Part shown: positions 1,557-55,695 of the stretch, in pieces
Layout: every line of letters begins with the position of its first letter
Numbering within the stretch: the stretch's first letter is position 1
Assembly (NCBI RefSeq): GCF_964204645.1
Contig: NC_134030.1
Location: 9,451,222-9,515,221, forward strand
Origin: Tubulanus polymorphus
Lineage: Eukaryota > Animalia > Nemertea
Reading direction: 5' to 3'
Length of the DNA stretch: 64,000 nt
Notes under the pieces: generated by a model
Told to the model about the DNA's origin: nothing
The model's input: only the letters and a program-made list of their open reading frames with translations
Databases searched by the model: none
Made by a program: the position numbers and the translations under genes

Positions 1557-4500
1557 ATGTGGAGACAATATTTGTGCGGTCTCCTTGCGTTAGCGGCTGC
1601 GTTGAATACGATACAAAGCGCTGAAGGTAGGCATCAATTAGATTTCAGGCTAATCCGATGATCATGAAATTTATTGCATGTATATTTCAAACAGCAGAAA
1701 GCACTTAGATACCGATTTATTTCAATATCCTGGTTGAAAAATTGACGGAACAATAGCGCCGGATGAATCGGCAGAGCATGGACGTAATAAACTTACATAC
1801 ATACTTTGAGGTATACCGAGGTACCTTGTTTTTTGAAACTATATACATATCTCTAGGAGGTGATTATTGTATATACATGTAGCATCTTGGTTGTCTCCTC
1901 AGGTGCTACAGTATATTAATGTTGATTTGATTCCAATCGATTCTTATTAAAATGAATAGTGTTTTTACGTAGAATCATGTTTCATTCTCGCGATTTGTCA
2001 CCAAAGACTGTTAGAATATGACATTATATTGAATACTGAATGTTTTGGATTCGGTTTAGACATCAACTGGTCGGTCATATTTTTTTCAGGGACATGTTTT
2101 GGTAGCAGTTGCACCGGTTGGTCGTGCCACTGCGTTTCCAATACCGAAGACGCAAATGCAAAAATCGTCTGTCCTTCTTCATCGGCCGGGCGTCTTAAAT
2201 GCCCGTCGTCGGCACCGCATTGCGAGAAAAGGGCCGATAGATACCGTAATTGGGAGTGGAAAGGACCAGGTTGTCAAATAGGTAAGTTACAATTACAAAT
2301 AGTCAGAGCAAATAGAGAGTGCGCGCTCAGAAATTCGCGCACCTGTCATTCATTTGTCAAACTCTCAAGTTCAGCGTCTATCGAAAACAAATTACATTTC
2401 GTACCGGTATATGGGTTAATTATCTACGAGATCATCGATAACGAGATCATGATAAGTATTTTGGTGAATAAGCTACACTTGATCTTTAAGCAGGGGCCAT
2501 TTTCTCAAAAGTTGGTTTCAAAAGAAAGTCCCTGAATAAATGCCATAAGATTGTCATTACGTCAGATGTCCACGGGATTAAACTTTAGTGCAACTGTATA
2601 GCCACCAGAAAACTTTCCTCTATGTTAATGGATGGATTGCATTCAACACCTAACAAACTCTATACGAATGTCATTGGCAAGATACAAAAATGTCGATGAT
2701 GTAAATACGTAATTTCCGTGTGCAAACGCGGCCAGTACTTATATTTGATGATTGACTCCAGTTACAGGACATAATCAAACATGTCTGAATGAAATGACGA
2801 GAAAAATATATGTAGTTGTCTATAAAAATATAAACTGCTGTGGCCCAATTGCAATTGTGGCCCAAAATAACAGTGTGTGTATTATGATTGGCCAAAAAAC
2901 ATAAGTATGTGTAATTCATATAGAAAAACTAAAATGATGTAATCAAAACCTACATAACCCCCGGATAAAGTTCGAAAAGTCGTTTCCTCCTTTTTTTATT
3001 TCTAATTTTTGATAAATGAATTCTTTTGGTTTCCATCTTAATTTGTACATTGTGGGTTTTGAGCATACAACCATTCTCCACGTCTGGCTGTGGCTATTCC
3101 ACTAATAAGGCTAAGAATATTTTCCTGGGAAAATCGTTTTGAAAAAACGCAGAAAAATGATTTTGAAAAATCCGTAAGGGAATAATTAAGTCACGCAAAA
3201 AAAATATTTTTTTGAAAGAATATTCTATTAATACAACGCAATTACGCAGTGATACAAGTCGAGTCTGCATTCTAAATGTCGAACAATATGTTTTTAACAA
3301 TTTCAGTTTATATCGACTTATATAGATTGCAATAACCAATATATTAGCATACTTCAATTCTACATTATTTCAGATCTTTCATAAAGTTTTTAATTTTTGC
3401 ATCCAATTTTCATCGGTACGTGACGCGTGTAGGTAACGTGGCTGAATCGAAGCGGGCAACAATGTCCTCGAATGGTGGTTATTACAATTCACAGAAACAC
3501 TGCCTTGATGGCAAAATATCGGGCAGCCAGTACTGCGAAACGCGTGAGCAAATCAATCCTTGGATCATCGTCGATCTCGGTTCTAAACACGTCGTACAAG
3601 CGGTGGATTTGTACTATTCGACCAGAAGTTCAAGCACTTCTTGTTACAATTCTCAAAGTAAGTTTTCAAGCAAATTATTTATGTATACAACCTAGAACAA
3701 AGCGACAGATACCTACGTGGGAATAGGATTCATTTTACGTTTGGCATCGGTTGTTCCTTATTGTTTCACAGTCAATACGATAAGACAACGGCGGAACCAT
3801 GACCGGCACGTGCTCCCGTCTCAATTTTCCCGTACCGTTTGGAAAATACAATGGCAATATTTTCAGGGCACTTTTCCCACCCGAAATTGATAAGACAGCG
3901 CAGTGCAAAATTTAGCTTATGTTCTCTTAAAGTGCCCCTCACGTGCCTAGAAATTCGATGAATATGCACTGAAATTCAAAAAATTGTCCAGACTTGGCCG
4001 CGAGGATACTTAACTTGCCCTTCATTTCGTGCTCCTGACAAGTCTGCCCCTCGATCCACCCATGTAGGATGACACCAGGCCCAAGTTATCTTCGCTTCTT
4101 ATCCACTCGAAGGAATCAAGAATCTAATTCATAAAGAATTATCGAAGTAGCCACTTTTGTAATTCGTACATGTACTTTATCGCATTACTAAAGTGGCACA
4201 ATGCATGTACTAGACAATTTAGAATGAAACGCTAGCTCTACCCAGTGCTAGACAGTTACCGGTTAGATTTGACACCAAACATACAATTTGTTCATTTCAA
4301 AATGTTTTGACTCCTGAGCCAGGTTTTAACTGTGAGATTCCTGATACGCGAAACGAGGTTGCTAGAACTTCAGAAAAAAACAAAAACGTCGAATTAAAAG
4401 AAAAATCCGTTTTGTCGTGTTAAAAAGTGAGTTTAACTTGTCTTGGCGAAAATATCAACCTAAATCTAACTTGAAAGTCGTTTACTTTGTGTGCATCTCA

Positions 4501-7500
4501 AGATTGCGACCTTTGGTTTCCCACAATTTCAAATATGAATAGCTCATTAGTCCAGTCAAAATAGGACGAAACGTATATTGGAAACATTTTTTTCAGGAAG
4601 GTTGAAGTGGCGTTTGTTGCAGAGCCGAGTCGGCAATGGTAACGATGTGCACAATCCTTTGTGCACGAATTTCACCGATGTCGGGTACGGCTGCGGTAAC
4701 CACGTGCTTAAACGATGCGACGAATCGTTGATAGGGCGGTATGTTTCCGTGCAAATGATGGGTCGTGAGAGATTAAAACTAACTGAGATTGCCGTCATCG
4801 GATTCAAGTATATGGGTACGATCGTTGCTTTTGATATCAAATACCACATACTAATTTAATTTTTCTTCTCCGTACGGCTCTATACCCATAACATCCAACC
4901 CAAGCGGCAGTAGCCCTTATATATTAAAACACACACGTTGGAAACCATCATTTATGGATCAGGGTATATCGATTTTCAGACCCGACTCAGTGCACGTATC
5001 CAGGCTCGTTCGGTTGTATGGCTGAAGCTCAGTGCAATCTGAAAGTCCCGAATAGAGTCGACTATTTGACCGGTTACTGTCATAATGGCTGCAACGCGAA
5101 CTACATCGGCAAATACTGCGATAAAGGTCGGTTCCACAGTTTTTTTTTTACAATAATACTTGAACTTTATTGTCAGTTAATAGACTTTTGACAAATTACA
5201 CACATATATCAAAACATTTATAAAGACGATAACAACAATTTACAGTCCGAAAAAAATATAATAATACCCGTCTTACAATTAATTCTTTAATTCATTGTTT
5301 TTAATTATTGTCTTTAATTTATAGTTTTTAATTGATTTGTTTGCGAAGATTTAACGTTGAAAAATGGGACTGAATTCCCAGTCCGATTTCAGATTGATCT
5401 TGGTTAATGAATGTTTAAATTATTTTTCGAAGTGACTGCAAAAACAAAATGAGCTCTTCAAACTGAACCGGCATCAACATCAACTTATCAATTATCGAAA
5501 CTAACTTATCATCTTGTCACAGCGGATACCGGCGTGCCGTTTGATATTTGCTGGTTTTATTTTTTCAGAATTCAAAACAAGATCAGTCCCGAGCGTTGTA
5601 CCCCAACTGCATAGCGCTGTCGTCACTGTATCGTACCCGTATGTCGCCGATACTATCGATTCGGGAAAGGGTCGAATACGTGTGGGATATCGCGTTCTTT
5701 ACAGGAAAGTCGGCGACGAAGACTGGATCGTCGCTGGCACTGATCCGCCGCCTAAACCGGGTGATAATCAATACGTTTTGACATCTCTGCGGAATAAAGT
5801 CGTAACGGGTCTCGCTGAAAACACGGTTTACGAATTCGTGTTGGCTTTGCGGAAAATCGAAGCCAATTTGAACTCGACGCTTTACGGCAGGACTAAACAG
5901 ATACACATGCTGTGTTACGGTAAGTGTTAATTCGTGGATTGGAAAGATATTCAGTACGCGGCAGTATTGCGGTAGGCTATGTCCCGAATAAGTACAGGGG
6001 CGGAGCTAGGAAAATCGGAAGGCAGGAATGACTAAGGATTTTTTTCTGATAAAGCAGGGCGTCATAGGCTAATAGCGGGTCCCACCCTCGGTGTTAGATA
6101 TTTTGAAAAGAAAAACATCCTAAAAAATGCTAATTTCGAGAACATGAGTGTCCATTCGCTGGTTTTAACGATCTTTGTCTTGATGAAAAGGACAACCTTA
6201 ATGGAAAGGCAGGGGTCCGGATTCCCTAGACAACCCCTAAAATCTTCCCCGGCAAGAACACAAGCTTTGCGGTCGTTTGCGGACGGCTCCGTTCAATAGA
6301 ATTGGTCAATTACGTCGTCGATTTTACTACCTGATCCTGAATGTCCACATCTTAACGGGAAATGATATTGTCTTGTAAAGGATAAGTTGAATATTTTACC
6401 TACACGAACACTGTTCATTATATACATGTATATACTGTTGGTAAAATCTTGATAGAGATAAAGTTATTTTCAGCACCCGCCAAAATCAACTAGCTGATTT
6501 TATTTTTCGAACGAAATGTCACGAGATCGTCGTGAGTGAAAACGTATTTCGATTTATTGTGTCTAGAACCGCTAGTTGGCCCTGACATCATCAAGGGTGT
6601 CCAACGAGATGCAGCTGAGCAGACGTTCAGCATCTTTGTAAATTACTACGTAAGTTAACAGTAATATTCAGAGTATTTCACCGATCAAATACTTTTTTTG
6701 TGATGAAATCATGAAATTTTGCGCGTTTATACGGTTTCTTGTTTGTATCGTTCCTCTTTACTATAGTGGCTTTCGGATGAGCAGACACGGTGCAACGGAC
6801 CGGGCACTATCTACAGGATATTCAAACTCACGAAGAACAAGTGGCAGAACATCGGACAAGGATCGTTGATTAAAAACGTGAAACCTTACACGAAAGTGCG
6901 CGTGAAAGTCGGAGTACAGAATAAAGGAAACAGAGGCTTCGTTTTCGGCAAGATTCGTGAATTCTTGACAGGATCCGCAGGTGCTTTCTTTTGATTCGTC
7001 AGCCTTTTTTGGGAGGATTTCTTTCAACGTGAACAAATATATTTCATATCTCTGAACATAGTTCCAAACCTATCCTGTAATGTGATTGTGGTCACCGCAT
7101 ATATTACGTTTCGTCGTTTTTTAGTCGTGAATTTGACAGCGAAAAACATAAGCTCCAGTAGTGTGAACGTAACGTGGACAACTCCAGAGCAGCTTCGACA
7201 TCTACGATTCAACTTTACGGGCCTTTACGTATTGAGGAGACCATTGGCGTGTCCGGTGTCGTATCAGTCGGAGCAGGGTATACTGTTCAGTCCATTCCCG
7301 ACGAAACTCCACGAATTACGTCTGATCGGCTTGAAAAGCCACGCCGAATACGATGTGACGATCAGCCCGATTCCTCTGGATGGATCTATGCAACGCGGCT
7401 CCGCTACATTTAACTTCACAACGATGCAGTCAGGTAAAATATGAGTGCATCATTTCGTATAAAACAAAGTCATTCGTGCTATAGTAGACATTCGTGCTCT

Positions 7501-9163
7501 TCTGTAATTACCAGCGATAAATTAGAAATTTCATTTAACTCCCGTTCGATCATGAGCGAATTTACATTGAATATATTATGCTTCGTTATGAACTTGCCAC
7601 GCGCAATGTTTTCATCTGACGTGTAGACCTTATCAGTTCACCGAGAACCATCATAAGATAAGATATGATTTTATTACACTCTATCCATATTGGTAGTGGT
7701 AAAAGGGAATTTACCAAAGATAATCTCATTTAGAAAATTCTTTCGAACTTGTTGAAATATCGCTATAGCGAACTCGGTGGTTCACGCAAGCAACGTGTGC
7801 TAAATTGCCGCGATCCAATTACTTTCAGGATTGGATGAATCTGCCAGTAAAGCTGCCCACCTCATTAAATTACAAATGCATGATCAAATTGATTTGTTTT
7901 TGATTTATATACAATGAAAAAAGAGAAAAAAGAGAAAAAAGCTATGCCATTAATCCGTGATAATCGTTTCGTACATCTAACCGTGAAAATCGTTTGGAGC
8001 CAGATATCTTTTCTGGGAGCTTACAACGCGTCTATCTATAGAATTTTGATATTTCAGCTCCTACAGCCAAACCCACCGCCCCGAGCGTTTCTCCACATAG
8101 AGTCAGCACGACTCACATCACGAATACAACTTGGTGCCGCGTCAACTTTTTCCACATTCCGTGCCAGTCGAGAAATGGAAACTTCACCGGTTTCCGCTAT
8201 AAACTCTACGAGAAGAACTCCGATGCGTTGGTTTGGGAAGAAGTGGTGATGGAGAGCGAACGCGTCTATATCAAAGACTTGAAACCGTTTACGGACTATT
8301 CGCTGAGCTACACCTGGACGAATGAAGCCGGCGAAAGTCCGCAATCCGACGCCACCGATTTCAAAACTGACGAAACAAGTACGTGTATTAGTCTTTTCTT
8401 CGGCTTGGATATGTTAATAGAACCTCCGAGAATCGACTACACGGCAATTTTCTAATAATAGTTTTTGCTAGTCGTTGCATGGTTTTCGATTTTTCATGTA
8501 CGAAGAACTGCTGGAAGTACAGATGAAAATCAACCCCGTCGACCGTAACGAGGACAATTTGGATTTCACAGCGGATTTCACGTTCGAGGAAAGCCGCGGA
8601 ATAGTTCTGAAATACGCCGTTGAGTGCGGAGAGACGACCGGTGACGGCGTCGAGCCGATAAGACCGACTAATTCGGATTGGGACATCGACGCATCTCCAG
8701 AGAATTTACCTTTCAAAGTTTACAATCTGAAGCCCGCTACGTGGTACGGGTGCTTGGTGAGTTTATTGGCATTTTTGCGCTGCGCTCTCGATATTTTCCT
8801 ACATATAACATATATCAAAGAGCCGTTACCTATATAAACAGGACTTACAGGTTATGAAAATTGCAATGTGCAATCAGTGTAGAAAGCTAGATCTATGTAT
8901 TTTATTCCATCATTTATAGAAATGATTAATATATGATATCCACAGTGTCTTAAGAGACATTTTCCCGAAAATATCGAACTAAAATGTTTCGGAAACGCAT
9001 GTTAAACTAAGGCCTAAATCCGCGTTGCGGTCATTACTGTTGGTTGCATTGAAACTGAATATTAACTAGATCTTGCACGTATCTATTTCAGGCGACCGCT
9101 TTGAGTAAGAAAGGCTGGGGACCGACTACCGCTTACGTCTACATATTGACAGCGTCGCGTTAA
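1557..9163 (+). CDS. Array copy 1: secreted EGF-like / F-type lectin (FTP) / EGF-like / 5xFN3 protein, 12 exons, ~817 aa
   Basis: Exons 1557-1626 (MWRQYLCGLLALAAALNTIQSAE, signal peptide), 2090-2281, 3433-3657, 4597-4815, 4980-5126, 5569-5919, 6567-6649, 6767-6980, 7125-7433, 8058-8378, 8506-8756, 9092-9163 (TAA). All introns are GT-AG with compatible phases; total 2454 nt. FTP-like motifs: GNVA..K.A.MSS, hDG, NPWIIVDLG, NPLC, GRYVSVQ, L.L.EI.VIG. FN3 motifs: V.W, GLxxxTxYxF/V, LKPFTDY..S..NEAGES. No hydrophobic C-terminus. Confidence 0.88.
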
Positions 9164-18900: not shown

Positions 18901-19073
18901 ATGCTTTTGTAATGTTTCATGTAATTGATACTTACCTTAAAGTTTAAACATCTATGCTGTATACAGCATCTACTGTATTCAAAAAATATCTATATTTCTT
19001 CTAGGGAAGTGCTTTGAGTAAGAAAGGCTGGGGTCCATCCACTGCTTACGTCTACGTCTTGACAGATGGTTGA
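12943..19073 (+). CDS. Array copy 2: secreted EGF-like/FTP/EGF-like/5xFN3 protein, 12 exons, ~824 aa
   Basis: Exons 12943-13018 (MVRLTYALSFLVAVYALDSFMLPSE), 13246-13443, 14173-14391, 14501-14719, 14872-15018, 15184-15543, 15622-15707, 17253-17472, 17628-17936, 18013-18333, 18572-18822, 19005-19073 (TGA). Total 2475 nt. Same intron positions and phases as copy 1. Confidence 0.88.
15731..17113. mobile_element. ~1.38-kb non-autonomous insertion in intron 7 of copy 2, Helentron/HINE-like
   Basis: Absent from the paralogous introns (copy 4 empty site reads cacaattcaaaat-gagacatc). AATAA at both junctions. gggtttctg near both ends. An (aat)n tract then a 3' stem-loop gggtttctg..cagaattcc. Confidence 0.55.
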
Positions 19074-26700: not shown

Positions 26701-28629
26701 GTCGGAGATCTAAGCGCGCCATTGGCTTTCTTCATCATTTTTTTCAGATCATCAAAGGAGATCAGCGACGATGCGAGGCACCGGGCACGATCTACACAAT
26801 TTTCATACAATCAACGAAAAATGATGCGTGGACGAATATCGTCCATTATTACAAAATTTCCGGCCTGGAGCCTTTGACGAAATATCGAGTGAAAATCGGT
26901 ATCAAGAATAAAGGAAATGTTAACTTTGTCTTCGGCAAAATTCGTGAATTCATGACAGGATCGGCAGGTATTTCTTTTACATTACAGTATGTTAGTACTT
27001 GATATAGCTTATAACTAAGGCGTCATCATTCTTCTACGCTGATGCAGTTACCCATTTAACGGCGACAAATACATCACTCGGTCTGAACGCTTCCTGGAAG
27101 ACCCCCGTTCAACTTCGACATCTACAATTCAACTTCACTGGAGAGTATCGAATGATAAGCCGGTTAGCGTGCCCGAAACAGAGGTCGAGTGAGAAAACAC
27201 GAGGATGCCCATTCCCAACCGATATCAACGAATTAGAACTAGTCGAACTGCAGAGCTACGCCTATTACGAGGTGATAATTACTCCTGTTTCGCTTAACGA
27301 CAAATCCAAAATGGAACGAGAATCAGTTGCATTAAATGTTACTACAAAACAGTCAGGTAATTGAGTTCACGTTCGGTTGGAAATCAACACATTTTACATC
27401 ATGATGTCACACGACTACATTACTTTTTCTAGCTCCGACTGGTACCCCTAGACCAGCCGAGATACGACCACAATTCGTGAGCTTATCGACAATCAAGGAG
27501 ACAACTTTGGCACATGTCATTTTTTACGAAATATCGTGCGAATCGAGAAATGGAAACTTCATCGGTTTCCACTTCAAACTATACGAAAAAAACTCCGGTG
27601 AATTAATACGGGAAAATGTCACGACGAAAAATGATTATTATATTGAACATTTGGAGCCGTTTACGACCTATTCGCTAAGCTACACCTGGACGAACGAAGC
27701 CGGTGAAAGTCCGCAATCCGATGCCACCGAATTCAAAACAGACGAAACTAGTAGGTCACATATATTTCATCAAGATACAATATATCATAAATTTACCAAC
27801 TTTTCTATTTAGTGAAAAGTAGTTTTCATGAGCAATATATGAGGTAATTCCCTAAGAAAATATCTGATGCTATCTGAAATAGATTTTTAGCAGAAAATGT
27901 ATTGCTCGAGGTCAATACCCGAGATAGGGGAAAGAATCGAAATTCATCATGGCGTTTATGTAAGTCGGACGGTAGACTAATATTTTCGAATAAAGGTTTT
28001 GAATTCTAAATCCCATTTTGACCAGTTCTGCTCGATTTCTGCTCGCACTAACAAAATGATACTAACTGACAAAATGATACTATGTACTTGTGTACTATTT
28101 TCAGCATTATTGGAAGTACAGATGAAAATAAACCCTGTTGATCGTAATGAACACAATTTGGACTTCACCGTCGATTTTACGTTCGAGAAAATCCGCGGAG
28201 AAGTTCTAAACTATGCCTTACAGTGCGGAGAGACGACCGGTGATGGCGTCAAACCGAAAAGACCCAGTCGTTCGTATTGGAGTATCGATAAAGATCCGAA
28301 GAATCTACCTTTCAAAGTTTACAATTTGAAGGCCGCGACGTGGTACGGATGTAGGGTATGTCAGCTTTCTAGAACTCAAAACAAAGGTTTATATAAGCAC
28401 GTTGCAGATGTAATAGGTCATGTATGTTGTTAAAATGCTTCGCTGTTATTTGATTCAACACTCACTCCGATCACTACCATAATGATTTACTCGCACATAA
28501 ACATATTTATTCTAGGGAAGTGCTTTGAGTAAGAAAGGATGGGGACCGTCAACGTCTTACGTCTACGTCTTGACAAAAGATCGAATTTCATCCGGAGCCA
28601 CGCGTGGACAATGGGAGAGCAGCAAATAG
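23782..28629 (+). CDS. Array copy 3: secreted EGF-like/FTP/EGF-like/5xFN3 protein, 12 exons, ~839 aa (15-aa C-terminal extension)
   Basis: Exons 23782-23860, 24040-24237, 25045-25260, 25377-25595, 25761-25907, 26062-26421, 26512-26600, 26748-26967, 27048-27356, 27433-27750, 28105-28355, 28516-28629 (TAG). Total 2520 nt. CGA at 28582 where copies 2, 4 and 5 have TGA. Confidence 0.87.
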
Positions 28630-28997: not shown

Positions 28998-31900
28998 ATG
29001 TGGGGACAGTATCTGTGCGGTCTCCTTGCGTTAGCGGCTGCGCTCAATGCAGTACAACACGCTGAAGGTAGGCCTATGTATCGGTTAGATTTCAGTCTAT
29101 TGTAGTGAATAACATCGATTATTTCAAGTACTTTCATCCAATTTTTTTGTGGGATTGATCAAGCATTCTAACCTCGATTGAGTGCAGGAACCTATTTTCA
29201 TTGTCAACTTGCTGGTCTAACCAGAATTGGCCATATCCGAGGCCATTCAATAGATCTCTAACCGAAGAAGCCCAATTAATTACACGGTGATCGCGTATGA
29301 TATCATTTATCATATGCGTATGATAGCATTTGATTGTACATCAGCTTAGTTAGTTTCTCAGGTTTCATTTTAATTATATTAAGCCAGTATTTCACAATTA
29401 ACATTCTTTGCTGGATACATATGGGATATTGATCAATTTCACTAAATACAAAATTATCAGGTGTTGAGTTTTTAACTCCCAGGAGGTATTTATAAAATTT
29501 GAGAGGGATTCTCTCCAGTTTTCTTTGTTCCTTGAAACCCCATATTTGTTAGCCATAAGTTAAAACAGGTACTATAAGGCTGTTAAAGAATTTGATGGCT
29601 AGCCTGGGTGTAACTCTTGGATACTGAAGAAGGTATTTTATAAAATTATAGTATGCTGATACTCCCCGAGACGCCAGACTGTTGATAGTTACATTATGTC
29701 TTCCATTGAAATTGAATTCCATACCTAAGTATGTAAAACAATTAACACTTTCTATTAACTTTTTCATCGATCTTCCAGACAAAGTTTCTTACATTGACTG
29801 CTTTTCTAAAGACGACAATTTTCGTTTTTCCATAATTAATTCCGATATGCATTACATGACTGTAATTAGAAATATTATCAAGGGCACATTGAAGTCCCTC
29901 TGGAGTCTCGGCGAGTATAACCGTATCATCAGCATATAACAGTAATAAGAGTTCGAATGTACCTAAGTAGATTTCATCATAATCAGTGCTTTTAACATGT
30001 TCTTCCATATCATTGATAAAAAGATTAAAAAGAAGAGGGGATAAACACTCTCCCTGTCTTACTCCAATGTTACATACAAAATACTCAGTGAAATTGTTAT
30101 ACTGCTTTACGCACGATTTCGTCGTTCTATACATGGAGTGTATTATTCTAAGGATTTTACCAGATATACCATTACTATGGAGTTGGTTCATCAAAATTGA
30201 CTGATCAACCAAGTCAAAAGCTTTAAAAAAATCTAGGAAAGCAGCATAGACTTTGTTACCCTTACTAATAAAAGGATTTATAACTGAATTTAGGACAAAT
30301 ATTTGATATATGGTGCTGTATGAAGGACTAAAACCTGCTTGCGATTCTGTGAGAACTGAAAAAGCCTCACACCAGGAAGTTAATCTTGTATTTAATATGG
30401 TTGAGAACAACTTTCCAAAAACAGACAGTATAGTAATGCCTCTAAAGTTATTCGCATTAGAAGTGGGCCCCTTCTTATGAACTGGTACTATGTATCCCAT
30501 ACTCCAACTTTCAGGATATATGCCACTCTCAAAAATCAAATTAAATAGAATAGTTTAGAGGTTTTTGAAATGATTAAATAAGCTGTTTGAATCAGGTAGT
30601 TTACATTCAGGCGTAGAACCTTTAAATTTTGTCCACAGATCTCTATGATTATTGTTGTCATTAAATCATTGGTACCGCCGACCAGTTAAATAAGTCGACG
30701 GTTCTCGAATCGTCGGCATCGTCGACCAATAAAGACGGTTGCCTAGGTCAAACTACAAAATAACACCTTTTTCAAAAAATTAGTGAAATTACTTGACGCA
30801 CTATAATATGACCGTATATTGGACTTGACCCAGTGCCACATGATTCCTGCAGATTTGATTCCATTTGATTCTTTGTGAATTGTGTTGATTCATACATATG
30901 ATCTTATCTAGACGATTAAGACGGACAGCTAAAATGTGATCTATATTGATTGTTTTTAATTCGGTTTATGAATGCATCGGTTGGTCATATTTTAGGGACC
31001 TGTTTCGGAAGCAGTTGCCCCGGTTGGTCGTGCCATTGCGTTTCGGGTACTGCTTCCCGAAATGCGAAAAAGGTGTGCCCTTCTTCAACGGCCGGACGTC
31101 TTAAATGCCCGGCGTCGGCACCGTATTGCGAGAAGAGGGCAAATAGTTACCGACATTGGGAATGGAAAGGACCCGGCTGTCAAATAGGTAAGTAGAGTTC
31201 CACTTAACCAGGGGCCAGTTTCTCAAGCGCTGGTTCCAAAAGAGAACCAATGAATACATACCAAGGTTGTCATTATGCCAGATATCCACGGGATAAACCA
31301 TCTTTTGAGCAACTGGCTATACAGAAAGCCTTCATATTAGATGACGATTGCATTCCAACGAATGCCTTATTTTGCTATTGGCAGATAGTAGAATAGCGAA
31401 TAAAGAATGATTTAAATGCATTATTTCCGGGGGTAACTACGACCAGTACTATAAGAGTATTTGATGATGGACGCGGTTACTGCACATAAATATCTGTTAT
31501 TGTTAATAGAAATATAAACTAGCAACATTTATTTGCTGTCTGCCGTAGTAATAATGTGTATAATGAGTTGGCCAATTATGATACGTGAAACGTAAACATT
31601 CTAGATGAATACTGAATGTTGGGAGGTTTCTTGCGGAAAAGATCTAGAATATTTTATTCGACGACTCATTTTAGAATCTTGGAAAAAGGCTGAACAATCG
31701 ACGAGAAAAGAGAAACGTTGCACCAAATGTGACTTTAGAAAGAAATATGATGGAGAAAGATCATTTCTAAAAATGTTTTCGCCTTAAATCCACGAGGGAA
31801 TGATAAGGTCACGCCAAAAAATACTTTTTTTTGGAAAAAAATACTTTCGACCATCGAATGAAGCGAAATTGTAAAGAAACAATGCGGCGACGAAAGTCAA

Positions 31901-34900
31901 GGTTACATCCTAAACGTCGAATATATTTTTAATAAGATTCAGTACATACCGACTCATCGATTGCATAATAGGCAAACAGACTTTCATTTTTTCGTAAAAG
32001 GTTTTGATTTTTGTATTCTCTTTTCGTCGTTGCGTAACGTAGGTAACGTGGCTGAATCGAAGCAGGCGAGAATGTCCTCAAGTGGGGGTACTTACAATTC
32101 ACAGATATACTGCTTTGATGGCGCAGTATCAAGCAGTAGGTACTGCGAAACGCGTAAGCAAACCAATCCTTGGATCATCGTCGATCTTGGCGCTAAATAC
32201 GTCGTGCAAGCGGTGGATTTGTACTATTCGACAAGAAGTTCAAGCGCCTATTGTTACAGTTCTCAAAGTAAGTTTTCAGGTGAATAAGTAGTGCATACTA
32301 AGAATAAAGCAACAAATTGGAATGAAATTGGTTTGATTGACATTTGGCATTGAGCCAGTTGCAATGGGATCGGCCGTTCCTTACTGATTCGCAATCGAGA
32401 CGTAAAGGATGACATTAGGATAGGTTATGTTTTCTTCTTATTCACTCATAACTCTGACGCTTGCTGGACCCCGTGCCGCAGTTGTCGGTTAGGTTACTGT
32501 TAAATTATTGATGTGTAAATGAGGGCAATTCCAAAACGCAAAGGAAGAAAATCATTGAATTTTCCAAAAAAATAATTTACGCAAAAAGGGTAAGCTTGCT
32601 TTGGTGATGCCTATATATCAATGTCGTACATATTACTTGTTTAGGTTTTCGACATGGATTAGGTTTCCCTAATTTCGAATATGAATTGCTTATGGTGAAA
32701 CCTCTTTTTCAGGGAAGCTGAAGTGGCGTTTGTTGCAGAGCCGAGTCGGTGATGGTAACCATTACCATAATCCATTATGCACGAATTTCACCGATGTCGG
32801 GTACGGCTGCGGTAACCACGTGTTAAAACAATGCGACGAATCGTTGATAGGGCGGTATGTTTCCGTGCAATTGATGGGTTATAAAAGATTAAGACTTACA
32901 GAGATTGTGGTCATCGGATTCAAGTATATAGGTATATGTTCGTTGTCTTCATCGTCGAAATGCCATTCCGTGTATTTTGTGGTTTGTATTATTGCGCTGT
33001 GTGATGGCTCTGTACTCATAACATCCCAATAGTCGAAGTGTGAGCATGTATCTTTTACGCGTTAGCGGCAATAGGTCTCTAGATTGCAGAATACGTGATA
33101 AAAAACAACGATTCAGTGTCAGGATACATCTCACGTCTTTTTCAGATCCGAATGAGTGCACGTATCCAGGCTCGTACGGTTGCATGGTGGAAGCTCAGTG
33201 CAATGTAAAAGTCCCCAATAGAGTCGACTATTCGACCGGTTACTGTCATAATGGCTGTAATGCGAACTATATCGGCAAATACTGTGAAAAAGGTTAGCGT
33301 TGTCTCATCCTGCCTGCAAGGATTTGGAATTTTCTCCTAGATCTGGAACTCTAGGTGCAAATGACAGTGCACCCGGTTTACTATATGAGCAGGTTTTGTT
33401 ACCTCCTTAATATCGACGCCTCGAACTTTGGATCCCTTCTTTATTGAATGAACATCGTTTACCTCACACCAAAATAACTCAATCTATTCATCTCTCATCG
33501 TTATACTTTTACAGAATTCAAATTGACGTATACTATGAAATTGGTTAGCCAGCTCCATAGCGTCATCGTCAAAATAACAAACCCACGATTACCGAATGGT
33601 AAAACAGATTCAGGAAAGGGTTCTATACGTGTGGGATATCGCGTCCTTTACAGAAAAGTCGGCGATAAAGACTGGATCGTCGGAGGTACTGAACCACCAG
33701 CAAAACCGAGAGGCAGTAGATACGTCATGGCTTCGAGGCGAGATATAGTTATTTCAGGTCTTGCTGAAAACACCTATTACGAATTCGCCGCGAAGGCCTG
33801 GAAAATCGACGCTAATCTAAATTCGACGTTGGACGCTCGGAAATCATACGCATTTACGTTATGTTACGGTAATTCCCTCTATACTGTTAATGCATATTTC
33901 GTTTGGCATATAAAAATTCAACGCACTATATTCGTTTTTATGAATAGAGCCACTAGTTGGTCCGGATGTCACCAGCTTGCGACAACAGCGAGATGTCGAC
34001 TCGTCGTTGTATAACGTTTACGTAGAATACGTGGTAAATAGAAATCACAATTCAAAATGAGACATCTAGTTTGAGAACCTATAAACCTTAAACGGATTCG
34101 TTGATGGTGGTAATCTGCAAAGATAACACGTTTCTTTACGTATCCGAGCATATCCACTAAGCAAACCCATTGTCCTGGAATCTGCAACGAAAAGAATAAC
34201 CCGGAAGTTATCTGCGATTGGCTGCGCAATGCCACAAATCAGAGCACGTATACATGCAGCAGCACTCACTGACAAGGGGGCGCTAGCTGACGACCTGGTT
34301 GTCGCAGCGTAAATACTGTTATGTTCCGTTCCGATGCTAAACCTGCTTATATTATATATGCGAGTCAGAGCTAACGGTTGTGATTTACTTCCTTCGACGT
34401 GTCTTTTCAGACGATCAAAGCAGATCAGCGACGTTGCAACGCACCGGGCACGATTTACAGACTTTTTATTCGATCAACGACAAATGAAACGTGGACGAAT
34501 GTCGGCCAGAATTACAAAATTTCCGGCCTGGAGCCTTTGACGAAATATCGACTGAAAATCGGTATCAAGAATAAAGGAAATGCTTACTTCATCTTCGGCA
34601 AAATTCACGAATTCTTGACCGGATCAGCAGGTGTTGTTTTTTTTTAAATATTAGGTTCAGTTGATTATCAAAATCGATCAATTCTATGGTAGAAAGTTGC
34701 TTTTTGTAACACGGAACATTTTCAATTTTCATTATTTATATTAGATAATACGATTTTTTTATTTTCTCTCGACTCGCCTTAACGGCGCTGTTGCAGTTAC
34801 CCACTTGACGGCGACAAATACACCATTCGGTCTGAACGTTACCTGGAAGACTCCCGTTCAACTTCGACATCTACAGTTCAACTTTACTGGGAAATATCGG

Positions 34901-36271
34901 TTAATAAACAGGGCAGCGTGTCCGAAACAGAGGTCGAGGGAAGAAACTCAAGGATGTCCATTCCCAACCGATATCAACGAATTAGAACTAGTAGAACTGA
35001 GGAGCTACGCCTATTACGAGGTCACAATTACTCCTGTTTCGCTGAACGACAAATCTAAAGTGGAACGAGAATCAGTTGCATTAAATGTAACCACAGAACA
35101 GTCAGGTAACTGAGTTCACGTTTGGTCAAAATCGGCACATTTTACATCAAAATGTAACACGACTATTTTCCAGCTCCGACTGGTACTCCTAGACCACCCG
35201 TGGTTTGGCCACAAGATGTGGGCTTATCGACGATCAAGGAGACAACTTGGGTACAGATACGTTTCAACGAAATCTCGTGCGATTTGAAAAATGGAAACTT
35301 CATCGGTTTCCACTACAAACTCTACGAGAAAAACTCCGGTGAATTAGTAGACGAAAATGTGACAGTGCAGAGTTCACGTTATTACATTGAACATTTGAAG
35401 CCGTTTACGACATATTTGCTGAGCTACACCTGGACGAACGAAGCCGGTGAAAGTCCGCAATCTAATAGCACCGAATTCAAAACAGACGAAACTAGTAGGT
35501 CACATATATTTCATCGACACAATATTGATTATCATTTTTGCTTAACGCGCATTATGTTTTCCCATTCAATAGCATGTTATTTACATAAGAATCGAGTTCC
35601 TTGTTGATAGGAAAATGTCTGAGGCTATCAAAAAATGTTTTGGCAGGGAATGTCATGCATAAGATTCACCCCGGACATAGAGGAAACATCTATCGCATCA
35701 AATAGAAATTCTGAGATTAAAATTTAATTTCGATCAGATCTACTCAATCTCTATAGACCTCACAGCTTATATGATATAATTTTTACTATTTTCAGCTTTA
35801 TTGGAAGTAAAGATGAAAATAAACCCCGTTGATCGTAATGAGGACAATTTGGACTTCACCGTCGATTTTACGCTCAACCAAATCCGCGGAGAAGTTCTAA
35901 ACTATGCCTTACAGTGCGGAGAGACGACCGGTGACGGCGTCAAACCGAAAAGACCCAGTCGTTCATATTGGAAAATCGATAAAGATCCGAAGAATCTACC
36001 TTTCAAAGTTTACAATTTGAAGCCCGCGACGTGGTACGGATGTAGGGTAAGTCAGCATTGTAGCACCCGAAACCTAGGTATATATAAGTACGTTTGGCTG
36101 GGAGATGTAATAGGTCAGATATGTTGTTGAAATGCTTCACTATTGTTTCATTCAACGCTCACTCCGGTCAGATTTACTCAACCACGTATTCATTTCTTCT
36201 AGGGAAGTGCTTTGAGTAAGAAAGGCTGGGGTCCATCCACTGCTTACATCTACGTCTTGACCGATGATTGA
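28998..36271 (+). CDS. Array copy 4: secreted EGF-like/FTP/EGF-like/5xFN3 protein, 12 exons, ~820 aa
   Basis: Exons 28998-29067 (MWGQYLCGLLALAAALNAVQHAE), 30996-31187, 32043-32267, 32713-32931, 33146-33292, 33515-33868, 33948-34033, 34411-34630, 34797-35105, 35174-35494, 35796-36046, 36203-36271 (TGA). Total 2463 nt. Confidence 0.87.
29150..30650 (-). mobile_element. Degraded non-LTR retrotransposon reverse-transcriptase fragment (RTE/RTEX-like), antisense in intron 1 of copy 4
   Basis: PVHKKG...NFRGITILSVFGKLF, QAGF, AFLDFFKAFD, GVRQGECLSPLLF, LYADD, KTK, FTYLG. Frameshift near 29780 and an in-frame stop at 29549-29551. Degenerate coding continues (IWGF..LLGVKNSTP..KYWL..WASSVRDLL). Boundaries are approximate and the clade call is tentative. 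Confidence 0.9.
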
Positions 36272-36851: not shown

Positions 36852-39800
36852 ATGTGGGTAGAATATCTGTGCGGTCTCCTTGCGGTTGCGGCTGCGCTTA
36901 ATACATTACAACACGCTGAAGGTAGGCATCAGTTAGATTTCAGTTTATGTATGGTAGTAAATAATATTGAATATTAGTAGTTTGATACCGATTTTTTTAG
37001 GGGAATGATAGCAATGATGCATCGATAAACTTACTATGATGTGTAAAGGCGTTGAATGTTTTGAATTCGGTTAATAAATTGATTCGTTGGTCATATTACA
37101 GGGACATGTTTCGGTAGCAGTTGCCCTGGTTGGTCGTGCCATTGCGTTTCCGATGACCGGAATGCAAAAATCGTCTGTCCTTCTTCATCAGCCGGACGTC
37201 TTAAATGCCCGTCGTCAGCACCGCACTGCGAGAAGAGGATCGATAGTTACAAAAACTGGGAATGGAAAGGACCTGGCTGTCAAATAGGCAAGTACAATAA
37301 AGAAGTTTCCAGTTTCTAGGCGCCATTTTGTGGCGGTCCCTCGAGGTCCCCATTGTTGCGATAATTTGCGCTCATTTTTAAAACATAAGTTTTTATTGAA
37401 TATCATATAGCTCTGCAGTCCCTTGCTTGATTAACTTTATTAATACACCATTTTGAAGGAATTGAAATGCATGTATTTTCCGGTGATTATTGGATTTTTT
37501 GAACGCAACAATTGAGAGCAGTGACGATTTGAAACCAAGGACCGCATTTTTAAACCGCGCTTCGAAAAATTGCGATTTTTATCAATTTTGAAATATCTTA
37601 GTGGTTATTAAAGCTATATTTCCCATTAGCGGAATAAAAGATATACAGTATGATAGACATCTGGTATGAATTTGGTGCTTTTGGAAGAATTTGAACCAAA
37701 AACCTCAAAATATTCCCTTAGACTATACAGTCTAAATGTCGAATATGTTTTTAATATTTCCGTACATGTCGACAACGATAACACGTTAGCAGACTTTCAA
37801 TCTCAATTTGTTCTAATCTTTCATATAGAAGACAGTTCTTTTTTAACATTTCATTTTTATCGGTACGTGACGTGTGTAGGTAACGTGGCCGAATCGAAGC
37901 AGGCGAGAATGTCCTCTTATAGTTCACAGAGATACTGCTTTGATGGCGCTGTCTCAGGAAGGTACTGCGAAACTCGCAGGGAACACAATCCTTGGATTAT
38001 CGTTGATCTTGGTGCTAAACACGTAGTGCAGGCGGTGGATTTGTACTATTCGACAAGATATTCAAATGGCTATTGTTCCAGTTATAGAAGTAAGTTTTCA
38101 CGTGAATTAGCGAATTATTGATACAGCGAAGCAATTGAATTAATTTGAAATTTGGCATTGACCCACAGTGTTGCACAGTGGTCAGTTGTTGTGGTTCCTA
38201 TCGTAGTAGTCCCTATTGTTTCAAAGTCGAGGCGTAGGATGACACCAGGCTAGCTGGATGGACCCAGTGCCACACAGTTCTCAGCTTCAGGTTTGACTCG
38301 TAGCTTGGAGTTACTCAAAGATCCTAGAGACAACATTTGTTCATTTCCACCAATGTTTTAACGCTTGAGTCAAATTCTACCCATTAAATTCTTGACGCGC
38401 AAATGAGAGCGCTAGATAGCTAAGATGCCTCAACGAGAAAAAAACGTCGGATTTTCTAAAGAGAAATTCATTAAACATCCTTTTGCATCAATGAGGGAAC
38501 TCTGTTTTGGCGGGGTGTGAAAATGTCAATGCTAATACGAGTTAATGACCTTTCGTTTCATGTGTAGCTCATATTTGAAAACTCTTTTTCAGGAGGGCTC
38601 AAGTGGAGTTTGTTACAGAGCCGAGTCGGTGATGGCAACGATTTACATAATCCAATATGCACGAATTTCACCGATGTCGTGTACGGGTGCGGTAACCACG
38701 TGTTTAAACAATGCGACGAATCGTTGATAGGGCGGTTTGTTTCCGTGCAAATAATGGCTTATGAGAGATTAAAACTAGCTGAGATTGTGGTAATCGGATT
38801 CAAGTATATAGGTACATTCGTTGCTTTCGATATTGTTATATTGAATTCTATAACATATTGATATATGCTTTCGGATTCAGGTATATAGGTACATTCGTTG
38901 CTTTCGATATTGTTATATTGAATTCTATAACATATTGATATATGCTTTCAATTATGTATCTATAAAAATTCGTTCTTCATTGTTATAATTTCCATGTAGA
39001 TAAAGAAAATTAGCGTTAATCATTAATCGTGTAGCCTGGGATTTGTATTATGTTCTCTACCCATAAAATACAAAAAATATTACGATGAAAACCATCATTC
39101 GGGATCACGATATATCAATTTTTCAGATCCGAATGAGTGTACGTATCCTGGTTCGATCGGTTGTATGACTGAAGCTCAGTGCAATATAAACGTCCCCAAT
39201 AGAGTCGATTATTTGACCGGTTACTGTCATGGCGGCTGCAACGCGAACTATATCGGCAAATACTGTGACAAAGGTCAGTCGTGTGTTACCCTGTGTGCAA
39301 GGATTCGAACTTCTTTGCTGGAGCTGGAAGTCCAGATACAAATTAATGGCTGTCTGTGTAGCGGCATAGCGCTCATGGCCAAGGACCGTGAGGGGATGGT
39401 CGACGATAGAAATCTCTTGAAATTTTGAGAAGAATTTGGTGGATTTTTACGACGTTGAACAGTGAATTCCGTGAAATAAATCATAAATAATCCACCAAAT
39501 CAATACCGCAATCACAGATCATTTCGCATGAGAAAATATTACTTCTTATTCGCCTGAATTGAAAAAATTCACTTAGGATTTTTTGGGGTAGACATTTTAA
39601 GGGAGCTCCAGATTTAGGAGGAGGGGGTCTGGACGCCCTTGGACCCCCTAAATCCGCGACCGGATTTTACTTTAGCAAGCAGCGTTTCATACCTTAGCAT
39701 CGACGCCATGAACTTCGAAATTCCTACAATTGAATGAACATCGTTAAATTAACCAAGATATCCGAACCTACCAATTTTTTGGTATATTTCAGAATTCAGA

Positions 39801-42429
39801 TTGACGTACACTATAAAACTGGTTAGCCAGCACCATAGCGTCAACGTCACTATATCGAATCCACGAGTACCGAATGGTAATATGGATTCAGGAAAGGGTT
39901 CTATACGTGTGGGATATCGCGTCCTTTACAGAAAAGTCGGCGATAAAGACTAGATTGTCGGAGCTACTGAACCACCAGCAAAACCGGGTGCCAGTACAAA
40001 TTTCATGGCTCCGATGCGGGATAAAGTTATTTCAGGGCTTACTGCAAACACACGGTATGAATTCACGGCCACGGCCCGGAAAATCGACGCTAATTTGAAC
40101 TCGATGTTGACCGAAGATCCTCTGAAAACCTATGTGCATACATTATGTCACGGTAATTCGCTTTTCGTTTTCAACGCATACAAATTATTCCGATTGGTAA
40201 TTAAGAAAATTCATTGTATTACCTACAAGTTTTTTTACTGATTAATAGGGCCACTAGTCGGTCCTGGGATTACCGGTCTGCGACAACAGCGAGAAGCTGA
40301 TTCCCCGTTGTTCAAAGTTTTCGTAGAATACGAGGTAAATGAAAATAATGATTCCAAAGTAATATATCCATTTTATTGAGAAACGCCTTCTTGAGGAGCG
40401 CTTAATTCAATGATGGTGGTATTTTTTTGGTACCATAATACGTTATCTAGTATTCTTAGTATGATTGCTGGTAGATTCAGAGTGGAGAGTTGAGATCGGT
40501 TTTCTCCGTGTTTGTCTTTTCAGACGATCACAGGGGATCAGCGACGTTGCGATGCACCAGGTACGATTTACAGAATTTTCATCCAATCAACGACGAACGA
40601 TACATGGATGAATGTCGGCCAGAATTACAAAATTTCCGGCCTAAAACCGTTGACGAAATATCGAGTGAAAGTCGGTATCAAGAATAAAGGAAATACTAAC
40701 TTCGTCTTCGGCAAAATTCACGAATTCTTGACAGGATCAGCAGGTGTTGCATTTTATTTCAAATATTTGAGTTTGTAGATGTTAATAAGATCATATCTAT
40801 GAAAGTAGGCTATACTTTGTCAAATACTTACTTTAACTCTATATTACTTATAATATTTCTATATCTACGTTTACTCACGATAATGAAGTTACCCATCTGA
40901 CGGCCGCATATGCACCATTCGGTCTGAACGTTACCTGGAAGACTCCCGTTCAACTTCGACATCTACGATACAACTTCGCCGGAAAGTATCGATTGATAAG
41001 CCGGTTAGCGTGCCCGAAAAAGAGGTTGACTGAAAAAACAAAAGGATGTCCATTCCCAACCGATATCAACGAATTAGAACTAGTCGAACTGAGGAGCTAC
41101 GCCTATTACGAGGTGACAATTACTCCTGTTTCGCTTAACGGCGAATCTAAAATGGAACGAGAATCAGTTGCATTTAACGTAACCACAAAACAGTCAGGTA
41201 ACTGAGTTCAGGGTTTGTCTAAATCAGCACATTTTTAATCATAATGTCACTACACAACTTTTTTCAAGCTCCGACTGGTACCCCTAGACCAGGCGACGTT
41301 TGGCCACAAGATGTGGGCTTATCGACGATCAAGGAGACAACTTGGGCGTCAGTCCGTTTCCACGATATATCGTGCGAGTCGAGAAATGGAAACTTCACCG
41401 GTTTCCACTACAAACTCTACGAGAAAACCTCCGGCCAGTTGGTTCGGGAAAACGTGACGATGGTGAGATCACTTTATTACATTGAACACTTGAAGCCGTT
41501 CACGATCTATTTGCTGAGCTACACCTGGACGAACGAAGCCGGTGAAAGTCCGCAATCTGATACCACCGAATTCAAAACAGATGAAACTAGTAAGTCACAT
41601 ATAACAAATCATAATGAATTACCATTTTTCCATCCTGCGCTGCGTTTCCCCATTAGTTTGAATGCCGTTTTTGATAATTTTCAGTAATTGAGATCTTTGC
41701 TGATCGAAATATTGTCTGAGGCTATCCTATCCAAAACTACTGTCTTGACGAAGAATGCCATGTTCAAGAACAATTCCAACAATTTTCTAACAACGATTTC
41801 ATTAGGCTAAACAAAAATGATACCTTGTTTCTCCGCAGCGGCCGGGTCATTCATGTGAATAGAATGTTCTGATTTTCATTTTTGTCATCATATCTGCATA
41901 GGCAACTCCGAGACCTAACTGGTGCAATGATATCATTGTACTATTTTCAGCTTTATTGGAAGTAAATATGAAAATAAACCCCGTTGATCGTAATGAGGAC
42001 AAATTGGACTTCACCGTCGATTTTACGCTCAACCAAATCCGCGGAGAAGTTCTGAGCTATGCCTTACAGTGCGGAGAGACGACCGGTGACGGCGTCAAAC
42101 CGAAAAGACCCAGTCGTTCATATTGGAGTATCGATAAAGATCCGAATAATTTACCTTTCAAAGTTTACAATTTGAAGCCCGCGACGTGGTACGGATGTAG
42201 GGTAAGTCAGCGTTGTAGCACCCTAAACCTTTGTTCATTTTAACAAGTTAGGCTGGGAGATGAAATAGGTCAGATACTTTGTAATCCAACTTCTTCCATA
42301 TTGTTTAGTTCAGCGCTTACTCCAGTCTTTACTTAAAAAACACATATATATTTCTTCTAGGGAAGTGCTTTGAGTAAGAAAGGCTGGGGTCCGTCCACTC
42401 CTTACGTCTACGTTTTGACAGTCGGTTGA
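36852..42429 (+). pseudogene. Array copy 5: full 12-exon structure with a premature TAG in exon 6 (pseudogene or truncated/alternatively spliced form)
   Basis: Exons 36852-36921, 37102-37287 (GC donor), 37880-38089, 38593-38811, 39127-39273, 39793-40152, 40249-40334, 40524-40743, 40889-41197, 41269-41589, 41951-42201, 42361-42429. Conserved Trp of DKDWIV is TAG at 39951-39953, after ~330 codons. Confidence 0.8.
38794..38947 (+). repeat. 77-bp tandem duplication spanning the exon 4 donor of copy 5
   Basis: tcggattca(a/g)gtatataggtacattcg...atatatgctt at 38794-38870 and 38871-38947, one mismatch. Confidence 0.9.

Positions 42430-55421: not shown

Positions 55422-55695
<274 letters not shown>

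Follow-up and report, generated by a model that had tools for sequence, protein, structure and literature searches.

The window, a 64-kb stretch of Tubulanus polymorphus NC_134030.1 in whose numbering all coordinates are given, holds six gene units (1557–42429) arranged head-to-tail on the same strand, which we term c1–c6 for array copies 1–6. Five of them (c1, c2, c4, c5 and c6) yielded 12-exon models with AG acceptors, GT donors (one GC) and identical intron phases, and matches between the larger exons of different copies gave E-values of 1e-15 to 1e-43. Models and inter-copy matches agree with the original prediction of six tandem 12-exon copies, of which c1, c2, c4 and c5 are open, c6 carries a stop codon and c3 is deleted:

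c1, 1557..9163, + strand: open, 817 aa, XP_074652820.1; head type A, divergent stalk type X; exons 1557-1626, 2090-2281, 3433-3657, 4597-4815, 4980-5126, 5569-5919, 6567-6649, 6767-6980, 7125-7433, 8058-8378, 8506-8756, 9092-9163.
c2, 12943..19073, + strand: open, 824 aa, the last 723 covered by RefSeq XP_074653557.1; head B, stalk Y; exons 12943-13018, 13246-13443, 14173-14391, 14501-14719, 14872-15018, 15184-15543, 15622-15707, 17253-17472, 17628-17936, 18013-18333, 18572-18822, 19005-19073.
c3, 21984..22554, + strand: pseudogene of type B; frameshift in exon 1, end of intron 1 fused to the middle of exon 11 (junction near 22213), TAG in exon 12 (22486-22554).
c4, 23782..28629, + strand: open, 839 aa; head B, stalk Y; exons 23782-23860, 24040-24237, 25045-25260, 25377-25595, 25761-25907, 26062-26421, 26512-26600, 26748-26967, 27048-27356, 27433-27750, 28105-28355, 28516-28629.
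c5, 28998..36271, + strand: open, 820 aa, XP_074653166.1; chimera of head A and stalk Y; exons 28998-29067, 30996-31187, 32043-32267, 32713-32931, 33146-33292, 33515-33868, 33948-34033, 34411-34630, 34797-35105, 35174-35494, 35796-36046, 36203-36271.
c6, 36852..42429, + strand: 815 codons, TAG at 39951-39953 (codon 331, exon 6); chimera of head A and stalk Y; exons 36852-36921, 37102-37287, 37880-38089, 38593-38811, 39127-39273, 39793-40152, 40249-40334, 40524-40743, 40889-41197, 41269-41589, 41951-42201, 42361-42429.

The c1 and c5 models are identical, letter by letter, to their RefSeq 'uncharacterized' proteins. A twin of the c5–c6 pair, 99% identical, lies ~77 kb downstream; the c6 stop is absent there, but exon 11 carries a +2 frameshift. 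The products of c2, c5 and c6 end just past the fifth FN3 strand, as had been proposed for every intact copy, whereas c4 stops 15 residues later, with a polar tail reaching 17 residues past that strand. The domain order is signal peptide, EGF-like, F-type lectin fold, EGF-like and five FN3 domains, located in c1 as follows:

2090..2281, + strand, exon 2: EGF-like module 1; six-Cys pattern only, no Pfam match, low model confidence.
3433..4815, + strand, exons 3-4: F-type lectin domain; Glu in place of the fucose-site His, RxD element missing.
4980..5126, + strand, exon 5: EGF-like module 2; Pfam EGF only at E about 0.005-0.06.
5569..9163, + strand, exons 6-12: five FN3 domains; five FN3 sandwiches in the predicted structure.

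Within the proposed architecture, the F-type fold and the five FN3 domains were confirmed and the EGF assignment is weak; in the family Pfam recognized F5_F8 type C and fn3 only; the MAM and Ig head of R2B receptor tyrosine phosphatases (RPTPs) was not found. The best solved match of the stalk, using the family profile, was the RPTP-mu ectodomain (2v5y, E 4e-16); a single sequence matched PTPRK weakly, and the PTP domains of the parent receptors described below fit R2A/R4 structures as well. An N-terminal hydrophobic stretch, judged by eye and hydropathy, forms the putative signal peptide, no membrane-spanning segment follows it (maximum 19-residue hydropathy 0.87–1.18, versus 3.15–3.7 in nearly all RPTP paralogues), and in the structure model the hydrophobic residues at the C-terminus make up the final FN3 strand. 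Together with the lack of any PF00102 or RPTP-tail match in the window, this upholds the prediction of products with neither a membrane helix nor a catalytic domain. The predicted pI is 8.6–9.1, with 7–12 N-glycosylation sequons.

A variable head on a constant stalk, as originally envisaged, is not supported: mean identity among copies is 68% in the head and 71% in the stalk, and dN/dS stays below 1 in every domain. Array diversity stems from two head types (A and B) and two stalk types (X and Y) shuffled at exon 5, the most homogenised exon (87% mean identity) and the site of the recombination breakpoint; c5 and c6 are the resulting chimeras. For the soluble copies dN/dS is about 0.36, with 0.18–0.40 across mature domains and 0.25–0.33 pairwise in the head exons, and in these pairwise, domain-level comparisons no domain showed an excess of amino-acid change and the head is not hypervariable. 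Open frames of >800 codons were kept at dS up to about 1 with conserved cysteines. The soluble lineage is an old one on which purifying selection acts, and the birth-and-death evolution suggested earlier is supported.

The lectin fold was recognized both by sequence (phmmer to FBP32, E 6e-11) and in predicted structure, where FBP32, the lectinolysin lectin domain and eel agglutinin AAA were the top Foldseek matches. The fucose motif of F-type lectins, H-X24-R-X-D-X4-(R/K) (PMC5712786), is lost: the His is Glu in c1, c2, c4, c5, c6 and the far copy and Gln or Ala in other soluble members, and RxD is absent in the window copies. Among membrane RPTPs, eight of the nine checked retain the fucose His. 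In the cation motif h2DGx the DG is kept, preceded by Cys and Leu/Val/Phe and followed by Lys, Thr or Ala, and the loops around the sugar site vary between copies and are rich in Tyr, Ser and Arg. The proposal of a glycan-binding F-type lectin thus stands for the fold and is weakened for fucose, because none of the copies retains the motif; other specificities are possible for deviant F-type domains (PMC5712786).

Homologues with a membrane helix and PTP domains, which the original prediction had suggested looking for, were found in the RPTPs of the same genome. Soluble protein P0001 aligned with RPTP P0003 over residues 26–814 at 33% identity (E 2e-108). One RPTP gene shares the intron phases of exons 1–8 and 12; its exon 12 closes with a GTAAGT donor in phase 1 and is followed by FN3-6. 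The stop of the array genes stands where the RPTP paralogues have a phase-1 donor. The T. polymorphus expansion is RPTP-kappa/T-like (e.g. XP_074661320.1, with at least 12 further RefSeq clusters) and shares with the soluble genes the signal peptide and the EGF-like, F-type lectin, EGF-like and FN3 ectodomain, but adds FN3-6 and a juxtamembrane FN3 carrying an RRKR site, followed by a membrane helix and a pair of PTP domains; the parent receptor carries an Fn3_PTPRU domain. Many members are Cys-to-Gly pseudophosphatases in the first PTP domain, P0041 is a membrane-anchored relative lacking the phosphatase domain, and the RPTP array includes deleted and partly duplicated genes. RPTP-tail homology was absent from the window, the twin, the second locus on the same chromosome and contig C55, and none of the RPTP-tail or PF00102 matches listed genome-wide, which are lower bounds, fell on the array's chromosome, C6. 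The array genes are very probably truncated paralogues of this worm's RPTPs, which gives the predicted release of a receptor ectodomain as a soluble family its parent receptors; the tree being unrooted, truncation is deduced from the exon structure and by comparison with other FN3-PTP genes. Since the RPTP paralogues are 81–85% alike, the receptor expansion is younger than the splits among soluble loci, between which identity is only 29–54%, with the stop at one and the same domain border throughout; P0005 may represent a second, independent truncation. For C4, C10 and most of C12, the loci are known as coordinates or RefSeq proteins.

The best explanation overall, which we favor tentatively and put close to an even call, is that truncated RPTP duplicates act as soluble partners or decoys. 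A lectin-headed, possibly R2B-like RPTP gene was very probably duplicated and lost everything beyond the fifth FN3 domain; a stop now stands at the former exon/intron border, and the open copies are predicted to yield a secreted, basic glycoprotein of about 90 kDa, which would be the gene-encoded equivalent of a shed receptor ectodomain. Such proteins may circulate in body fluid or mucus, where the altered, non-fucose head site may bind either the membrane RPTPs or a class of ligands that both recognize; within a recognition system they may serve as decoys, as bridging molecules or as opsonins. This decoy or partner role is possible, although we would not count on it. Engineered RPTP-sigma ectodomains work as decoys (PMC6017057), and P0041 and the pseudophosphatases suit a tunable receptor set. 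Because soluble and membrane forms are only about 32% identical and the soluble heads lack the fucose triad, which most of the receptors keep, a simple same-ligand decoy is unlikely, and the head lacks the hypervariability of an arms-race receptor. A more elaborate scheme, which we regard as speculative and unlikely, would have three tiers built on one ectodomain: signalling and pseudophosphatase RPTPs, phosphatase-less membrane forms, and older secreted ectodomains whose lectin site has switched from fucose to a protein or a self-glycan and whose heads are exchanged through recombination at the EGF2 exon. In this scheme the secreted forms would serve an orphan invertebrate RPTP expansion as its endogenous ligands or as decoys.

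The same origin could have led to a new job, with the products serving as structural or adhesive proteins of mucus, secreted tube or extracellular matrix and the lectin fold as a self-association or surface-binding module. Tubulanus secretes tubes, and the basic pI, the sequons, the rod of five FN3 domains, the lost fucose site and the combination of purifying selection, dosage-type tandem expansion and homogenisation would all be in keeping with such a use. R2B RPTP ectodomains form homophilic rigid rods (PMC10815196), and thick mucus is described as covering nemerteans (PMC6410017). However, the proteins have no repeats, low-complexity stretches or cross-linking segments of the sort that structural secretions typically contain, and two distinct head types were retained and swapped, which leaves this reading rather unlikely. 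Stand-alone pattern-recognition lectins of changed sugar specificity, independent of RPTPs, would account for the conserved fold and DG motif and for the site loops differing between copies, and would fit the other specificities that deviant F-type domains may have (PMC5712786). We consider them improbable, as His is Glu in all copies, RxD is absent, one lectin domain on a long rod means low valency and diversifying selection was not seen at the domain level.

Gamete-recognition proteins are usually under positive selection, whereas the soluble lineage is old with a dN/dS of about 0.36; a role as gamete-surface or seminal recognition proteins is very improbable. It would draw on the part that F-type domains play in fertilisation in other animals (PMC5712786) and on the searches made, in which no full-length relative was detected outside the species.

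No more credible is the idea that the genes encode membrane receptors with missed downstream exons or are parts of one long gene. A phase-1 GT stands directly 5′ of the stop in c1, c2, c6 and the far copy, splice donors in this genome are often non-consensus and a same-strand GPCR reading frame follows c2. Yet such a GT is absent in c4, c5 and five C55 copies, the RefSeq models of soluble members all end at the same place, at the stop, and an AATAAA lies 99–388 nt downstream of each stop. In an RNA-like run, four GT..AG joints fall exactly at predicted introns 8–11, and spliced contigs cover exons 2–3 of c6, while a 2015 RNA run (X5) yielded no contigs and carries no weight either way; the RNA contigs do not show transcript 3′ ends, and among the joints listed none leads from exon 12 to a further exon or from c5 to c6. 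With a separate signal-peptide exon in each copy and no RPTP-tail homology nearby, neither onward splicing to membrane or cytoplasmic exons nor fusion of the copies, the two outcomes that would refute the original prediction, was seen. The gaps behind c4 and c5 measure only 368 and 580 nt, with no membrane-like reading in either. Two hydrophobic readings, after c1 and c3, were dismissed as candidate membrane exons, since other copies do not share them and they show no homology to the RPTP helix. A splice from c2 into the GPCR was likewise rejected: the RefSeq model ends at the stop, and the GPCR is a complete single-exon family member. Its occurrence next to both soluble and RPTP arrays was discarded as synteny evidence, that family having >1,000 dispersed candidates. 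Non-functional debris of the RPTP expansion, suggested by two broken copies of six and by the damaged genes of the RPTP array, is largely refuted by the long open frames at their dS and dN/dS, the conserved cysteines, the spliced transcripts and the greater divergence of soluble members from each other than of the receptors.

Phosphacan, fish TLR5S, AChBP and OPG/DcR3 are soluble ectodomain versions of receptors; phosphacan is a splice form rather than a gene family, and the rest stem from unrelated receptors. Among published systems, the Biomphalaria SudRes1/LG5R MEGF and galactose-binding (fucolectin) RPTPs with scavenger-receptor-F-like clusters come closest, and schistosome resistance maps to clusters of MEGF/galactose-binding-domain RPTPs in snails (PMC12297450, PMC13712769). 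As these sources present them, they too are tandem lophotrochozoan paralogues combining EGF repeats with a galactose-binding/fucolectin domain (the worm EGF assignment is weak) and varying in copy number and domain loss. Their members are single-pass membrane proteins, unlike the anchorless worm array proteins, with no FN3 stalk in the descriptions and helix-less members treated as possibly fragmented annotations; the likeness is one of architecture, no snail protein being among the search matches. Vertebrate R2B RPTPs (mu, kappa, rho, lambda) have a MAM and Ig head, four FN3 domains and a membrane anchor (PMC10815196), in contrast to the soluble worm proteins with their EGF/F-type lectin/EGF head. 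F-type lectins such as AAA and striped bass FBP32 share the fold of the worm head, which is embedded in an 800-residue mosaic. Uroplakins 2/3, non-catalytic proteins derived from PTPRQ (PMC5242461), likewise arose from a duplicated receptor gene cut back by domain loss; in their case the membrane helix was retained and the outer FN3s were lost, opposite to the worm array.

Outside relatives were sought with exons or RefSeq proteins as queries, in searches that are limited and no proof of absence. An exon-2 profile against 1.8 billion representatives matched T. polymorphus proteins, and those non-worm matches that were checked were bacterial or carried no name; at 0.55–1.75x length, P0001 and the family profile gave T. 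polymorphus proteins or generic FN3/bacterial noise, an RPTP ectodomain query gave T. polymorphus proteins or generic noise, and the ESM Atlas returned no relative, with every feature score <0.9. Exact-product look-ups for the neighbouring GPCR and protein P0005 returned no record, and no description of this family was found in the literature searched.

New here are the loss of the fucose His in every soluble copy, the old soluble lineage under purifying selection, as read from its sequences, and the c5/c6 chimeras. Their importance is limited by the single-species range. RPTP domain loss in this worm keeps the outside and drops the anchor, a route opposite to that of uroplakins, and if the products were true mucus or tube components they would be a clear case of a signalling-receptor ectodomain recruited as secreted material. 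Snail lectin-headed RPTP clusters are candidates for parasite recognition; a soluble ectodomain family maintained in one genome with such receptors would offer natural, easily expressed ligand-binding probes, and the array allows a direct test of whether such receptor families are tuned by soluble partners.

Self-comparison of the window revealed a block recurring six times between ~1.5 and 42.6 kb, confirming, small corrections aside, an array of six head-to-tail 12-exon genes. The model of copy 1 was built by hand, and those of copies 2–6 were fitted from it under AG/GT and phase constraints. The predicted tally was correct, with four copies open, one stopped by a nonsense codon and one deleted: copies 2, 4 and 5 also have open frames (824, 839 and 820 aa), copy 6 is interrupted by TAG at codon 331 (exon 6, 39951–39953), and in copy 3 exon 1 is frameshifted, a deletion joins the end of intron 1 to the middle of exon 11, and exon 12 contains a TAG. 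The stop was expected directly after the last strand of the fifth FN3 domain, which fails for copy 4, where it lies 17 residues further on.

Features of the array and its surroundings
1557–9163: copy 1, 12 exons, 817 codons, no internal stop
9381–10451 (−): intact single-exon rhodopsin-family (Srw-like) GPCR frame, between copies
12190–12658 (+): decayed copy of the 19982–20974 GPCR, ahead of copy 2
19982–20974 (+): intact single-exon rhodopsin-family (Srw-like) GPCR frame, between copies
29549–30539 (−): LINE-type reverse transcriptase fragment in copy 5 intron 1 (RVT_1, E 2e-29)
37290–37630: very high-copy short interspersed repeat in copy 6 intron 2 (summed contig depth >40,000 in the DNA-like run X1)
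43911–45735 (−): F-box and leucine-rich-repeat (LRR) gene directly after the array, which we take to be FBXL7-like
55422–55694: run of 91 AGC triplets

The decayed remnant before copy 2 indicates that the GPCR was part of the duplicated unit. The Srw-like family is very large, with 1,740 first-look candidates across the genome.

The gene products appear to have a secretory architecture. Exons 3–4 encode an F-type lectin domain, as indicated by a match to FBP32 (E 6e-11) and by fucolectins as the best structural matches, and exons 6–12 give five beta-sandwiches in the predicted fold, the third and fourth of which match Pfam fn3. The two flanking EGF-like modules are named chiefly by cysteine pattern, with weak EGF matches for exon 5 and no EGF match for the poorly modelled exon 2. 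Signal peptides were judged by eye; as predicted, there is no hydrophobic segment beyond the N-terminus that could serve as a transmembrane helix, and the hydrophobic residues at the C-terminus form the last FN3 strand of the predicted fold and are probably not a GPI signal. The models of copies 1 and 5 are identical to XP_074652820.1 and XP_074653166.1, and XP_074653557.1 corresponds to the final 723 residues of copy 2; all three are proteins of the palaeonemertean Tubulanus polymorphus labelled 'uncharacterized' by RefSeq. Contigs of the RNA-like run X4, which bears no RNA label, omit four GT..AG stretches that are exactly the predicted introns 8, 9, 10 and 11, and contigs of the DNA-like comparison runs X1 and X3 retain them. 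For copy 6, one X4 contig joins exon 2 directly to exon 3, and the contig spanning exons 11–12 has copy-6-type letters. Neither onward splicing of exon 12 nor a fusion of copies 5 and 6 appears among the joints listed for X4, whose contigs are uninformative on transcript ends and include five joints outside that list. An AATAAA lies 99–388 nt 3′ of every stop.

The soluble genes very probably originated from receptor tyrosine phosphatases (RPTPs) of the same genome, in line with the proposal that they are receptor ectodomains released as a soluble family. Exon 2 has about 39 matches in the genome, and most of these, on contig C12 and elsewhere, precede PTP domains; at least 13 clusters are annotated by RefSeq as RPTP-kappa/T/delta-like or similar, and one such gene, read directly, continues with more FN3 exons, followed by an RRKR site, a membrane helix and then a pair of PTP domains. 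The soluble protein P0001 aligns with its RPTP paralogue P0003 over the whole length (33%, E 2e-108), and the intron phases of exons 1–8 are identical. In the RPTP gene, a phase-1 GTAAGT donor closes the counterpart of exon 12 and leads to FN3-6, and the window copies have their stop codon at most a codon or two from this border; a relic GT just before the stop is present in copies 1, 2 and 6 and absent from copies 4 and 5 and the copies on contig C55. No match to the RPTP tail was found in the window, its downstream twin described below, the second locus on C6 (the contig carrying the window) or C55, nor on C6 among the matches listed genome-wide, and the gap to the next gene is 368 nt after copy 4 and 580 nt after copy 5. 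The FN3 stalk may be akin to that of R2B RPTPs: RPTP-mu is the best solved FN3 match of the family profile, and the parent receptor contains an Fn3_PTPRU domain. Because R2B receptors are cut by furin within this domain and then shed, the soluble genes encode most of what such shedding would release.

Other derivatives occur among the receptors. In the RPTP array at C12:1325001–1355000, many first PTP domains have Gly replacing the catalytic Cys, a long TA repeat precedes the duplicated head of one gene, and most of the ectodomain is missing from a second. P0041 (XP_074661503.1), probably at C12 ~314–319 kb (−), has a full ectodomain and membrane helix, no PTP domain and a short, Tyr-containing tail.

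Within the array, mean identity among copies is 68% for the head and 71% for the stalk, with exon 5 (87%) and FN3-5 (83%) the most homogeneous parts. The original prediction is supported for soluble receptor ectodomains and birth and death, and not for a variable head on a constant stalk. Purifying selection keeps the frame, with dN/dS at 0.36 overall and 0.18–0.40 in each mature domain (Nei-Gojobori). There are two head types (copies 1, 5 and 6 versus 2, 3 and 4) and two stalk types (copy 1 versus all others), and the informative sites of copies 5 and 6 change sharply from c1-like to c2/c4-like within exon 5, at about codon 250 of the alignment. A clade of copies 1, 5 and 6 is rejected by the stalk data (AU p 0.003), while the head data only lean against one of copies 2, 4, 5 and 6 (p 0.07). 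Diversity thus arose by head/stalk shuffling together with birth and death under purifying selection rather than through a hypervariable head. Window 29885–46336 has a 99% twin ~77 kb downstream (C6:9558343–9574701), probably an uncollapsed haplotype since the conserved F-box/LRR neighbour is included, and a second downstream duplicate (98–99%; window 59117–63525 versus C6:9535133–9539561) is probably of the same kind; a recent duplication could also account for the twin. Its copy 6 has TGG in place of the window's TAG, and a +2 insertion in exon 11. In copy 6 a 77-bp tandem duplication (38794–38949) spans the donor site of exon 4; the twin carries a single unit.

Soluble members outside the array
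C6:3.81 Mb: soluble copy, XP_074652742.1
C55: at least five soluble copies
C10: soluble copy, XP_074658669.1
C4:7603171–7604018 (−): possible soluble copy with soluble-type FN3-4 and FN3-5 exons; no head exon or PTP among the nearby matches listed

Every soluble member read stops at the end of FN3-5. Identity between loci is 29–54% for the soluble proteins, and 81–85% among four compared RPTP ectodomains. In an unrooted tree a single branch separates all soluble rows from the rest, and the C10 protein, subject to a long-branch warning there, is as distant from the other soluble members as the receptors are. The tree is compatible with one old truncation and with two. F-type lectins are defined by the fucose motif HX24RXDX4(R/K) (PMC5712786). 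Among nine RPTPs checked, eight keep the His, and the Arg is present in all nine, within RxD or a sequence close to it; the His is missing in 9/9 soluble sequences (Glu in the window copies), and the window copies also miss RxD. The soluble proteins share the F-type fold but lack the fucose motif and, by sequence, do not qualify as fucose lectins; judged from these residues, their lectin site is altered, and they would not be simple same-ligand decoys.

Given the RPTP origin, we tentatively propose that the soluble proteins might serve the lectin-RPTP system as soluble partners, decoys or opsonins. This possible role draws on the family context, in which P0041 lacks a phosphatase and many receptors carry the Cys-to-Gly change, on the finding that RPTP ectodomains, when engineered, work as decoys (PMC6017057), and on snail clusters linked to schistosome resistance (PMC12297450, PMC13712769). 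The main rival, in which the proteins were recruited into mucus, the tube or the matrix, is somewhat unlikely; it would fit the soluble proteins as basic rods with predicted glycosylation, and R2B ectodomains form homophilic rods (PMC10815196). A lectin acting independently of RPTPs is improbable, a gamete protein very unlikely, and the view that membrane exons beyond the stop were missed about as unlikely; for genes with selectively maintained frames, the chance of non-functional debris is negligible.

RPTP derivatives through domain loss are already known (PMC5242461), as are soluble receptor paralogues in general and snail RPTP clusters with EGF/fucolectin heads. Profile, sequence and ESM Atlas searches of limited reach, started from exons or RefSeq proteins, found no protein of the same architecture outside T. 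polymorphus, and no paper describing it was found in the literature. What is new is a family of genes, maintained at multiple loci, that encode soluble RPTP ectodomains whose lectin site, by its residues, appears altered.
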